This document shows positions 55,378 through 59,106 of a stretch of DNA of 64,000 nucleotides, one piece after another (positions within the stretch are counted from its first letter, which is position 1; every line of letters starts with the position of its first letter). This stretch comes from Monocercomonoides exilis PA203 (Eukaryota; Protista; Preaxostyla). A program made the position numbers and the translations under genes. The stretch spans positions 538,329-602,328 of the forward strand of contig LSRY02000053.1 of NCBI GenBank assembly GCA_001643675.2, in the 5' to 3' direction. The notes under the pieces were generated by a model. It was not told the origin of the DNA and searched no databases. It saw only the letters and a program-made list of their open reading frames with translations.

Positions 55378-58300
55378 ATGATTCGAAATTTCACAAAGAG
55401 CCAGGATCGCCTGTGTGGTCTTTTATTATTTTTGTTTGTCTTATTTTAATAATTATATTTGATTTTTCTTTAAGTGGAAGAGCAATGAATCACAAAGGTT
55501 TGTTTTATTTCGTTCATTACATAAATTTCACAAATCTTATATTCATTTATTTAAAAAGATAAATTCAATAAAAGCTTCGAACGGAAAAAGAAAGAAGAAT
55601 CGTTGAAAATTAGCAAGCACGCAGTCCTTTCCCCTTCGCAGCCCGGCTTTTTCTCTCCTCCTTCTTCGTATCTCGTCACTCCGCCTTCTTCTCCTGCTCA
55701 AATTATGCCTCCGCTTTCTCCTCTCCGCTTTTCCGAAACTTCCCAATCCAACATTTATGATAATGTGACTTCAACTCCAAGATTATCAACTCATTTTTAT
55801 CCTTCTCGATCAAACACTCCTTCCCCTTCTCCATCTTCTTCGAAAAACAGAGAAAAAGAGAAAAATGGAGATGATGTTCCATCTTTGACAGAGTGGTTGT
55901 TTCGTTTGACGAAAGAACCAAATTGTCCAAAAATTGACTATTATTCATCAATCTTCAAATCACTCCCTCCTCAACCTTCGCTCGATTCAATTCGTGAGTT
56001 TTATCACGTATCCATCTATCCTCGTCCTCTTTATATATCAAAAAGTGAGGATTTGGATCAACTTTGTCTTGAAAATCTTCAAAAACAGGAAGAATTGGAG
56101 GATGAAAATGCTTGTTCAAACGTGGAGGAGCAAAATTTTATTGACAAATCTTCAAAATCAAAAAATGAACAACAAGGATGCACGGAAGGAGCAAATGAAG
56201 AAAGATATTTTGAGGAGGAGTACTTTCTTCATGATAGTTCAACTATTCAACTCACATCTGCTAGTGTAAGTTCAACAGATTTTTGTGAAAGAATGAAGGA
56301 GTTTGTCAATACAAAGAAAACAGAAACATCACACGAAATTGAAATGGAGGAGGAATTATCTGGAGGAGCTTTGAATGATACAGTGGTTGGAGCAACTAAC
56401 ATTTCATCAACGAAAAGGAAAAGAGGAAGACCAAGAAAAAGAAATGCTGTAAACAAAAAATGCAACACAACATCTGCTCGCAATGAAATGAATCATTCAT
56501 TTGCTAAAAAAAATGATAAACATCAAATGGAAAAGCAGATTGAAGGTGTTGATTTTGTTACAAACGAAGCAGAATGCATGTCCCATCAAGAAGAAAGTTC
56601 GTTCAGTTCATTTACCAAACATCAAAACCTGACACACAAAAAGTGCAAAAAAAGACAGAAAAGAAAAGTCAGAACAAATTCAAAAAGTTCAACAGAAAAT
56701 GAGGAGGAGAATATATTTGAAAGTTCAACAAACTTTTCTTCCACTGCACCTCTTCGCATTCAACCAAAAAGGATTTGCAAAATAGCTTGTTTGGAAAAAA
56801 TTGAAAGCATTTCGTTGGCAGAAAGGAGAAAGATTGTGAAGATGAATGATGGAAAGAGAAATGATGATTATTCTTCTTTTCAACATTCTGAGGATGAAAA
56901 TGTTCAATGTGCTGGTTTGACGAACTCGCTCGGATCAAATGATGGATCAACATCAAAAGCACTCAAAATTCGATCAAGAAGGAGCCAAGAAAAGAAAGAG
57001 AAAAAGAAATTGAATGATAGGAATAATTCTGTTCAACATTCAAAAGTTGGTCGTCCGAAAATGAAGAGGAAGTCAGTGTTGATGACAGAGGAAAACAAGC
57101 AACTCATTCATCAGAATTTTGAAGCAATTAAAGCCGAGAACAGAACATCTAAAGAGTCAATTTTATTCGATGACAAAACGAAGGAACCATTAACGAATAT
57201 GGATATTTATGGAGTTTCAGGAGATGTACTGAGGCCTTTGAATTTGCACACACCAGCTTGTGAAAATCCTGTAGACACTTCACCAAGAAGTGGTTACCAA
57301 ACACCTTCAAAATTTTCTGTTGCGCTGCGAACATTTAGCAAAGAAACATTTGAACCTTATCTGCAAACAGGCCTGCCAATTAGTAAGGATAAGAAAAAAA
57401 CACATGCTTGGGTCTATGCAATGTTTGTTTCATTCTGCAGAAAATTCAAATATGAGCCTTGGCCACTCAACATGGATGCAGTATATGGATTTATAAAACT
57501 GTTAGGAGCTGCTGTTGGTTATTCAATTAAAAGTTTGAGAGATTCTATTCTTCCATCATTGTATTATATTTCATGGTATAGAACGAAAGAAATTGTCACA
57601 CAAGAAGTGAGAAAGATGGCACTATTGGCAATAGCAGAAATTCGATTTCAAAGAGATCAAATGTTTGATAATGATGAATTGGAGGAGTTTCAATGTGTCA
57701 CAAAACACAAAGAACCGCTTATTGTTCGGGACTTGGATAGAATCCTTTCTTGCATTCCAGATTGGAATGTGGAAAAGCCGAGAGAGGCTTCTCTGTTTCT
57801 TTTTGCTCTCGCAACGGGAGCAAGAAGTTTGACATGCTCCAGAATTCGTCTGAGAGATATAGTGAGAGTGTTTTCAAAAGGAGGTTCGTCATTTGTCAAA
57901 GTCACAATCAATTTGGCATGTGGTAAGGGCATTAGGAACGATGATCACTGTGTCACGGTTGAAGGTGACATCAATGAAAAGAACAATCTGAACGTGATAT
58001 GGTGGTTGGAGGAGTATTTGGTAATCCAATATGGATTATCTTTAACAACATTTGACACTTGGGATTTGGGCGAACTTGGTTCTCATTTCCTTTGGGGAAT
58101 GAGGAAAGGTGCAATGAGGGCTCGTTTGCAAAAGCGAGCGAAGCAAGCGGGCTACCCTGAACAGATGTTTGGATTCCATTCTTTTCGTTCCGGGTTCATC
58201 TGTTCAGCACTGTTGAAAATCGAAAACAACCCAGAGTTGAAAGAAAATGTTCTAGAGACTGCGGCATACATTGCTAACTGGAAACTTGGTTCGCCTGTGG

Positions 58301-59106
58301 AAATGCAATACGTTGACAGAACGACTCGAGGAACTATCGTGGCAAACAGATTGAACTTCCCAAGAGAAGTTCTTGAGGAGGATGTTGTGTTCAGCGCTGA
58401 TCTGTCAGACCCTTCAGTGTTTCATAATATTGTCATTGGTGAAAGTGAGTGGAAAAGGGATTCAATAATAGACACATTCAACTTTTTCGTTCGAGAGGCT
58501 GTCAAATGTGCATGCAGAAAGTTTTTTTATCCTTACGTTCACTGCATCAAGTTGTGTCGAATGGCAGCTGTGAGGTATCTGAAACTGTTCAACAAAGAAG
58601 CAAGGATGTCAGAAAAGTGGGTGCAAAAATCGAAGGAGTTGGTGTTGGAACAACTGAAGCAAAAAGGATGTGATATCGTTTCAATCGGTACTGAATGTTT
58701 GTCAACGATAAAGGAATATCTCGATGGTACTGTCAAGTTGGAAGTGACTGGTAAAGAAATCAGAAAGAAGATCAGAGAAAGAAGAGAATGGAATTACATC
58801 ACAAATAATCCATCTCGAATGAGATGGTCTGCGAAAGAAACAGAGACTCTTGAATCGATGGTACTGAATGATTGCGATTTCGAAAAGATCAGCAAAGTTC
58901 TTCCACACAGATCTGCAAATGCATGTCGCGACAGAATAAGAAACATAATCAAGAAGCAGAAAAGGATCAATTTGTTACGGGAAAGTGGAGCGAATCAAAT
59001 TCAAAGTGTTGAGGATGATGCTGAAGAAGAAGGAGATAATTTTTATGAAGCATTTTCAGATGAAAGTGATGGAGATCACGTTAAACCAAACGGTGATGAA
59101 TACTAA
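55378..59106 (+). CDS. Tyrosine recombinase (Crypton/DIRS-like YR) with AT-hooks and C-terminal Myb/SANT-like domain, ~1200 aa; predicted introns 55413-55474 and 55498-55558
   Basis: Full catalytic set: R (ATGAR, 57823), K (GKG), HxxR (FHSFRSG, 58177-58188), W (ANWK), Y (MQYVD, 58309). A core-binding-like region (FVSFCRKFKYEPWP...FIKLL) lies upstream, with AT-hook KRGRPRK (~56416-56439) and Myb-like RWSAKE...FEKISKVLPHRSANACRDRIRN (~58820-58950). Two short GT-AG introns link ATG 55378 in frame to the 1167-aa ORF. Confidence 0.9.

Follow-up and report, generated by a model that had tools for sequence, protein, structure and literature searches.

The right end of contig C51 of the protist Monocercomonoides exilis carries a gene for a tyrosine recombinase (YR) joined to an AT-hook and to a single C-terminal Myb/SANT repeat. 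The gene lies in a repeated unit of about 5.5 kb that is bounded by telomere-like sequences, and it belongs to a family with members at other chromosome ends. The stretch analyzed here, 64,000 nucleotides long (C51:538329-602328), is called the window, and positions given without a contig name are counted from its first letter. The genome assembly (82 Mb, 101 contigs) was obtained by Oxford Nanopore Technologies (ONT) sequencing.

The contig ends in a terminal (TTAGGG)n telomere with occasional TTAGG and TTAGGGG units, which occupies at least 3 kb (61042-64000, + strand) up to the window end. The recombinase gene (55378-59106, + strand) is the final gene with a long open reading frame (ORF) before it. 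Its stop codon lies 1935 nt before the telomere and its transcription runs telomere-ward, as had been claimed in an earlier note on this DNA, which gave the distance as 1.9 kb.

An uninterrupted ORF of 1167 codons spans positions 55603-59106 (+), and residue numbers in this text follow it. The earlier note had put the start at 55378 and the length at about 1200 amino acids (aa). This start is followed by in-frame stops and is usable only via two short GT-AG introns; given these, it is right and yields a protein of 1201 aa encoded by three exons. Exon 1 (55378-55412) encodes MIRNFTKSQDR plus two nucleotides, in agreement with the N-terminus of the annotated paralogue MONOS_13507 (P0001), and a GT follows directly. 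Intron 1 (55413-55474, 62 nt, GT..AG) is required for a P0001-like N-terminus. Exon 2 (55475-55497) encodes GRAMNHK and is followed by intron 2 (55498-55558, 61 nt, GT-AG). Exon 3, including the stop codon (55559-59106), contains the whole functional protein from the N-terminal motif through the Myb repeat. All five segments are on the + strand. The annotated N-terminus of MONOS_13507, MIRNFTKSQDRL-GRAMNY-KDKFNK, is thus reproduced by the three-exon model. The two proteins are 94% identical over 1183 aa without gaps and 98% identical over the recombinase core (aa 560-1000). The exons of the model were read one at a time, with a check of the codons at the two junctions only, and the searches used exon 3 or parts of it.

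The recombinase region, i.e., a core-binding and a catalytic domain, is encoded at 57385-58362 (+). It is supported by invariant alignment columns, an AlphaFold model, Foldseek matches and a ratio of nonsynonymous to synonymous substitution rates (dN/dS) of about 0.05. The catalytic codons were located by alignment columns, all on the + strand: R741 (57823-57825), K775 (57925-57927), H859 (58177-58179), R862 (58186-58188), W893 (58279-58281) and Y903 (58309-58311). All six residues are invariant in an alignment of 19 paralogues and environmental homologues (A2), which bears out the intact R-K-HxxR-W-Y set reported earlier. In a broader alignment of 58 sequences with 16-30% identity (A3), R and K are invariant and the remaining catalytic residues are more than 90% conserved.

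The AlphaFold model, built from an alignment, has a mean predicted local distance difference test (pLDDT) score of 69, with 80-90 in the core. Its best Foldseek match is Cre (E 3e-6, probability 1.0, ~370 columns), and further matches include IntI, XerH, XerA, XerD and lambda Int, likewise at probability 1.0, and the Tn1549 integrase. As modelled, the protein is a Cre-type tyrosine recombinase with two domains, and its active site is of the Cre-like Trp variant. Cre uses Trp315 in place of the second His. Cre of phage P1 thus shares with the window protein the catalytic set R-K-H-R-W-Y, in which Trp replaces the second His. Sequence identity to Cre is about 15%, and the window protein differs from it by 560 additional N-terminal residues, a helical extension and the Myb repeat. 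No loxP-like inverted-repeat site was identified for the window recombinase.

Sequence searches recover this relationship poorly. The window protein does not match Pfam Phage_integrase (PF00589) at E<=1, and a PDB sequence search with the YR region (phmmer) gave no match. Phage_integrase does match 5 of the 58 relatives (best E 7e-9), so the YR-Myb family is a divergent branch of tyrosine recombinases rather than a non-member. Among ESM Atlas clusters, those nearest to the YR core carry the ALOG/Phage_integrase and NDC10_II families, which we treat as a lead only.

The C-terminal region proved to be a real Myb repeat, as had been proposed. The single Myb/SANT repeat is encoded at 58816-58944 (+). 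PF00249 (Myb_DNA-binding) matches aa 1072-1114 with E 5e-6 and 27 bits against a cut-off of 24.4, being the sole Pfam family above its cut-off, and the repeat is modelled as a three-helix bundle with pLDDT of about 80-89. The proposed likeness to the TTAGGG-binding Mybs of TRF-type proteins found no such backing. Helix 3, ANACRDRIRNI, is without the telobox signature. The solved structures nearest to the repeat in a PDB sequence search are SNAPC4, c-Myb, B-Myb, Trichomonas MYB3/21/24, Bdp1 and Reb1, and no chain of TRF, Taz1 or Rap1 type appears in that search at E<=10. Because the nearest solved Mybs are SNAPC4, c-Myb, the Trichomonas Mybs and Reb1, the TRF analogy is without sequence support, and a TRF/telobox-type Myb was rejected. 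The DNA-binding specificity of the repeat cannot be deduced from its sequence relatives.

A helical extension joins the YR to the Myb repeat (58420-58782, +). It forms helices in the AlphaFold model and includes a near-invariant FH motif; its column H442 exceeds 90% conservation among the 58 aligned sequences. Toward the N-terminus, the AT-hook KRKRGRPRKRN (56413-56445, +; aa 271-281) was read from the sequence and is conserved in position in the five closest subfamilies (L006, L008, L009, L010 and L013). The canonical hook KRGRPRK of the earlier note therefore stands, while its second hook, GRPK, is merely a weak half-hook. Further upstream, at 55882-56094 (+), paralogue alignment reveals a conserved motif of about 65-70 aa (...LPPQPSLD..R.F.H.S.YPRPL...) with 12 invariant columns among 15 paralogues (alignment A4). 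It occurs in more than 20 subtelomeric paralogues at 33-43% identity and matches no Pfam family. An ESM Atlas match of the N-terminal 180 aa to a Rap1 Myb cluster (best score 0.76) is within noise and was discarded.

The gene has been maintained by selection. Four intact recent copies have no indels in 3501 nt. Among them, dN/dS is 0.04-0.07 in the recombinase-Myb half (dS 0.14-0.30) and 0.32-0.39 in the N-terminal half. The recombinase-Myb part is under strong purifying selection, and a dN/dS of about 0.05 means that the recombinase was kept functional along the lineages leading to the intact copies.

Constraint of this kind raises the question of domestication. The recombinase could serve the cell at chromosome ends, in recombination of subtelomeres and telomeres or in chromatin regulation through the Myb repeat and AT-hook, the many copies being kept because they reside in a duplicating region. 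Purifying selection on several diverged paralogues with invariant catalytic residues would suit such a role, as would the conserved N-terminal motif and AT-hook. Host genes derived from Cryptons are known (Gcr1, Ndc10/Cbf2, ZMYM, KCTD1), and the Crypton-derived WOC protein localises to telomeres (PMC3212892). However, in the domesticated Crypton YRs known so far the catalytic site has been lost (PMC3212892), and the YR in the window is intact. We regard domestication as unlikely, also in view of the copy distribution and of the relatives described below.

With the C-terminal 668 aa as query, at least 68 matches are obtained across the M. exilis genome, a number that is to be read as a lower bound. 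Nearly all of them lie no more than tens of kb from a contig end, and most are transcribed in the direction of the telomere. Half of these matches (34 of 68) lie within the first 60 kb of contigs, against 7.4% expected (binomial P=7e-21), so that a scatter without telomere bias, named in the earlier note as what would refute it, clearly fails. At these left ends, 24 of the 34 matches are on the minus strand, i.e., point toward the contig end. At right ends, the matches with high coordinates are on the + strand, 1-31 kb from a mapped telomere or contig end (C1, C5, C8, C12, C18, C31, C48, C51 and C56); these positions were pieced together for about 15 contigs from protein records and pattern matches. 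The consistent subtelomeric location and orientation would also agree with a domesticated recombinase. Many family copies in the genome-wide match list are degenerate, though, and such birth-and-death turnover with many broken copies, together with the discrete unit boundaries, resembles the behaviour of a selfish element.

A degenerate older paralogue with several stops lies directly upstream of the unit in the same orientation (52421-53674, +, i.e., C51:590749-592002; 35-40% identity; ORF 53342-53632), and its 3' part precedes the 5' boundary motif of the unit. One truly internal copy was found at C6:811618-813312 (-), on a contig of 1.86 Mb assembled telomere to telomere. It is heavily degenerate, with 11 stop codons, and may be either an old relic of chromosome fusion or a rare internal insertion. 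As a separate observation, one distant member with 30% identity to the query occurs with identical scores at both ends of one chromosome (C25:5163-6326, +, and C25:2540048-2541211, -). The pair is inverted and both members point inward, unlike the closer subfamilies.

The gene is part of a unit of about 5.5 kb (54708-60232), both sides of which bear an identical telomere-like sequence of 14 nt. The 5' boundary motif, TTAGGTTAGGTTAG (54708-54721, +), has its G-strand on the gene strand. It is followed by an ORF-free 5' non-coding part, presumably the promoter and 5' untranslated region (54722-55377, +; 91-93% identity to the copies on C45, C21, C56, C1 and C60). After the gene come a 3' non-coding part (59107-60211, +), in which homology to other copies stops at about 60195-60199, and the 3' telomere-like tract TTAGGTTAGGTTAGGGTTAAG (60212-60232, +), whose first 14 nt duplicate the 5' motif. 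A regular-expression scan found only two TTAGG-type tracts within positions 1-61040, one at each unit boundary. They therefore coincide with boundaries that had been set independently by homology between copies.

When positions 53700-61043 were compared with the genome at the DNA level, the unit was found to be common to C45, C21, C56, C1 and C60 at 91-93% identity. The left limit of homology is sharp, at 54708/9 in four copies (C45, C56, C60 and C1). In five copies (C51, C45, C56, C60 and C66) the exact 13 nt TAGGTTAGGTTAG are followed by ATACAAAGG, each time after unrelated upstream sequence; the C1 copy has a variant of the 5' motif. In other subfamilies, on the strand of the N-terminal domain and 1-2.4 kb upstream of it, the 13-nt motif is also present on C30 and C91 and at two places on C59. 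The telomere link suspected in the earlier note is upheld by telomere-like tracts lying exactly at the element boundaries, in the window copy and in two environmental relatives.

The right limits vary. In C60 the homology stops at window position 57562, inside the ORF, and TTAGGTTAGGGTTAG follows. In C1 it stops at 59526, and in C56 at 60002, where AGGTTAGGGTTAAG follows. In C21 and C45 it stops at about 60199 and gives way to about 370 nt common to these two copies alone; after them C21 has GGTTAGGGTTAA and C45 has no tract. The distal tracts that follow these heterogeneous ends consist of 11-44 nt of telomeric repeat and start in differing phases. Telomeric tracts of 17-44 nt likewise follow the 3' regions in subfamilies L009 and L023. 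On C18 the terminal array, starting at about 1345047, interrupts a copy (C18:1343683-1344312) after about 1.4 kb and so captures an element in its truncation by the very end of the chromosome. The chromosome ends are stacks of same-direction, distally truncated YR units with short interstitial telomeric tracts between them.

Between the unit and the telomere lies a single unit of a telomere-associated tandem repeat (60220-61037, +), which has a period of about 1047 bp in arrays elsewhere. The repeat unit in the window starts with the telomere-like tract TTAGGGTTAAG. Arrays of this repeat adjoin many telomeres (C70:212816-221940, C69:3022-10811, C52:579992-588789, C55:3059-5727 and C18:7525-14851). 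The repeat might be either an ordinary satellite of the subtelomeres or a non-autonomous passenger of the YR-Myb system. Some telomeres are rich in TTAGG pentamers rather than TTAGGG (C2, positions 1-2400; C3, positions 1-2000; C18, about 1346100-1346600), which may reflect either a genuine variant of the repeat or homopolymer errors of nanopore sequencing in arrays left unpolished. These arrays matter because the terminal motif of the element consists of TTAGG units.

The unit has none of the parts of a retroelement that we looked for. Pfam scans of the gene, of the other ORFs of the window between 35 and 55 kb and of the 58 relatives detected no reverse transcriptase (RT; RVT domains), RNase H or gag. 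The repeated unit of about 5.5 kb contains one gene only, and the retained introns imply propagation as DNA. We thus rejected a retroelement of the DIRS, Ngaro or VIPER-TATE kind, for RT and RNase H are absent and introns are kept. This agrees with the earlier view of the gene as a YR-only, Crypton-style gene outside DIRS.

Two further origins were considered together and appear very improbable: that the gene encodes an enzyme akin to protelomerases, or that its product is the integrase of a viral element of larger size, for instance one like the endogenous nimaviruses that insert into telomeres. What favours them is general, i.e., that the YR fold includes protelomerases and that telomere-specific viral YRs exist (PMC10871703). 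Against them, the chromosomes terminate in ordinary TTAGGG arrays and not in hairpins. No protelomerase (TelK, TelN or ResT) is among the best 50 Foldseek matches, all of which are Cre, IntI, Xer, lambda Int or transposon integrases. The protelomerase analogy of the earlier note was consequently dropped, the best structural matches being Cre and Xer. A large viral insertion was rejected as well, since no viral genes lie nearby and the unit of about 5.5 kb has a single gene.

The family extends far outside M. exilis. A profile search among 1.8 billion cluster representatives yielded 2374 proteins at E<=1e-3, 210 of them at E<=1e-30, and the matches outside M. exilis are metagenome or Logan sequences. 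The family consensus of the 58-sequence alignment includes the Myb repeat, and distant homologues with 25-30% identity carry it, so the joint YR and Myb architecture read from the window is a conserved one. Besides the five Phage_integrase matches, Pfam found Myb_DNA-binding in 18 of the 58 relatives and UCH peptidase in 2. GCR1_C, NDC10_II and DUF3504 were found neither in the window protein (E<=1) nor in the 58 relatives (E<=1e-3). Thousands of environmental relatives on short contigs are a further point against a domesticated host gene.

We read 12 environmental contigs. In L034, a homologue with about 29% identity lies in a 5.46 kb interval bounded by TTAGGG repeats on the strand of the gene (17 nt on the left and about 60 nt on the right). 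L033 has TTAGGGTTAGGGG 266 nt upstream of the gene. The chance expectation under a looser tract criterion is about 0.5 contigs. A related-locus search with the 19-sequence alignment gave two JGI contigs with uninformative flanks. L031 (Logan SRR14517962, 2616 nt) encodes a homologue with about 28-32% identity and has a poly(A) run at the contig end, which indicates an assembled transcript and thereby expression of the family in at least one other organism. As an observation apart, a UCH ubiquitin hydrolase is fused to or precedes some relatives. Examples are P0133 (2064 aa, ENA ERZ1426852) and L037 from a TARA metagenome, with the hydrolase at 3052-4080 upstream of the YR gene at 4630-8079. 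They recall the oomycete Cryptons, which carry Ulp1/C48 peptidase genes (PMC3212892).

These data suggest an element of about 5.5-6 kb with a single intron-containing gene, a member of a diversified family. We lean toward the reading that the family is a Crypton-like, RT-less YR-Myb DNA element that is directed to telomeric repeats at the chromosome ends of M. exilis. According to the Crypton model, recombination takes place between a short motif at one end of the element and a target nearly identical to it, as documented for the active element CryptonF-1_cRei (PMC9977147). The model fits here because the terminus is a telomere-like sequence of 13-14 nt and the copies sit at telomeres in one orientation. 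The starting points are direct observations: the nature of the protein, the distribution and orientation of the copies, their boundaries and the selection on them. From these we infer that the YR would carry out the insertion, using the terminal telomere-like motif as its crossover site with a near-identical target, in the manner of Cryptons. Insertion would go into telomeric or telomere-seed sequence in a single orientation, and the Myb repeat and AT-hook, presumed to read telomeric DNA, may help to find or hold it. A terminal copy would then be eroded from its distal side and healed by telomerase. Subsequent insertions would accumulate distally and produce a stack of same-direction, 3'-truncated elements with interstitial telomeric tracts. 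Distal erosion and telomerase healing are thus the proposed cause of the ragged 3' ends. The genome encodes a telomerase RNA-binding domain at C36:2215302.

A broader claim is more tentative, though possible. YR-Myb elements may constitute an undescribed and widely distributed group of RT-less DNA transposons specific for telomeric repeats, and the subtelomeres of M. exilis may be built from them by insertion, erosion and healing. If so, they would parallel TATE or HeT-A/TART as DNA transposons, and might be able to cap or extend damaged chromosome ends.

Several observations weigh against an element that inserts by its own recombinase. We saw neither transposition events nor empty sites, excision footprints or circle junctions, and a head-to-tail junction of the 3' end, the motif and the 5' end had no match in the assembly. 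If a crossover took place within a long telomere, a (TTAGGG)n tract of variable make-up would be expected on the proximal side, but the proximal tract is exactly 13 nt. The C21 copy is without the 5' motif, and the 3' ends vary from copy to copy, which leaves a second terminus undefined. Several other subfamilies include copies that are 98-99.9% identical up to the edges of the 4-5 kb compared, which block duplication explains equally well. The strong purifying selection would also be compatible with a family of host genes. Among the 12 environmental contigs, telomeric tracts occur on just 2-3, and L039 ends in CCCTAA repeats, on the strand opposite to the gene.

Part of this evidence is what one would expect if the recombinase were not the mover at all. 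The family could be a host subtelomeric gene family or a long-dead element, copied between ends by ectopic recombination or break-induced replication; the boundary tracts would then be scars of erosion and telomerase healing, and the interstitial tracts would be entry points for recombination. Yeast Y' elements spread between ends in this way. Nearly identical copies at different contig ends, with identity up to the locus edges (L014/L018/L025 at 99.8%, L016/L030 at 99.85%, L011/L012 at 98.2%), agree with such copying, and the heterogeneous distal ends with tracts in differing phases are as healing predicts. The C18 copy truncated by the terminal array, the encoded telomerase RNA-binding domain and the many degenerate copies count on the same side. 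Still, repeated invasion by eroded TTAGGG ends predicts variable repeats of the recipient type, whereas five copies have an exact 5' end, including the same pentameric repeat variant, within unrelated flanks. A dN/dS of about 0.05 on a complete active site shows that recombinase activity itself has been maintained. A TTAGGG-bounded YR-Myb unit in distant environmental relatives is also hard to ascribe to the local dynamics of one genome. On balance we judge copying by host recombination doubtful, and keep the telomere-directed YR-Myb element as the preferred reading.

Our literature search found no description of a YR-Myb Crypton, of a telomere-specific Crypton or of this M. exilis family, in line with the earlier impression that the architecture is absent from the described Cryptons. 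The Crypton groups F, S, A and I were defined by Kojima and Jurka in 2011 (PMC3212892). With Cryptons the M. exilis element shares a single YR gene, the absence of RT, introns (which are often present in Cryptons), a unit of a few kb and a short motif at one end that would match the target. With CryptonF it additionally shares a C-terminal DNA-binding domain after the YR; this domain is GCR1_C in CryptonF and Myb in the M. exilis family. The terminal motif of Cryptons has 4-6 nt, whereas that of the M. exilis element has 13-14 nt and is telomere-like. Unlike Cryptons, the M. exilis copies are nearly confined to chromosome ends and have heterogeneous 3' ends.

TATE, a kinetoplastid YR retroelement, forms same-direction tandem clusters at a fixed position of the telomeric hexamer (PMC6681497). 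Elements of the TATE/VIPER kind thus resemble the M. exilis element in encoding a YR and in clustering in one direction at the telomeric repeat. However, TATE carries RT and RNase H, moves via RNA and has no reported Myb, whereas the M. exilis element has neither enzyme and keeps its introns. By analogy, the element would resemble a Crypton in its working and TATE in its niche. In endogenous nimaviruses, a YR is tied to insertion specific for the telomere repeat, with the repeat on both flanks (PMC10871703). In the nimaviral YR, which its authors place apart from Cryptons (PMC10871703), an arm-binding domain is combined with a C2H2 zinc finger and a SAM-like domain, while the M. exilis protein has Myb and an AT-hook. 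Nimaviruses are crustacean viral genomes of 280-400 kb, in contrast to a single-gene unit of 5.5 kb in a protist.

Protein-coding repeats that form chromosome ends in one direction, with turnover by erosion and re-addition, are familiar from Y' elements, fungal telomere-linked helicase genes and Drosophila HeT-A/TART. Y' units are separated by short telomeric tracts and spread by homologous recombination; HeT-A and TART spread by reverse transcription onto the end. These repeats encode helicases or Gag and RT, whereas the M. exilis element encodes a recombinase.

The rest of the window contains very long intron-free ORFs with a strong strand-specific GC skew (17369-26488, +; 1108-2433, -; 27862-34956, -; 5452-9990, -), which are subtelomeric giant genes. 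Two of them, of 3039 and 441 aa, end in the C-terminal half of a Tyr/Ser-Thr kinase domain, and those of 2364 and 1512 aa have no Pfam match. The ORF at 35464-36312 (+) encodes a thioesterase or alpha-beta hydrolase domain (E 6e-16).

To our knowledge, the telomere-specific mobile elements recognized so far are either retroelements (HeT-A/TART, SART/TRAS, the Penelope-like Athena/Coprina, and TATE) or giant viral genomes (endogenous nimaviruses). If the preferred reading is true, a compact YR-only DNA element with its own Myb repeat and AT-hook would represent a third route to telomere targeting. It would also offer a simple system for studying how a tyrosine recombinase reads a six-base repeat, with a single polypeptide and a 14-nt candidate site. 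If the recombinase is instead domesticated, a eukaryote would have retained a catalytically intact YR at its chromosome ends, which would be a rare occurrence. The existence of thousands of environmental relatives suggests a group of eukaryotic transposons that has been overlooked. In M. exilis itself, the family resides at nearly all sampled chromosome ends and explains the make-up of the subtelomeres, which is not described in the genome papers of this organism.

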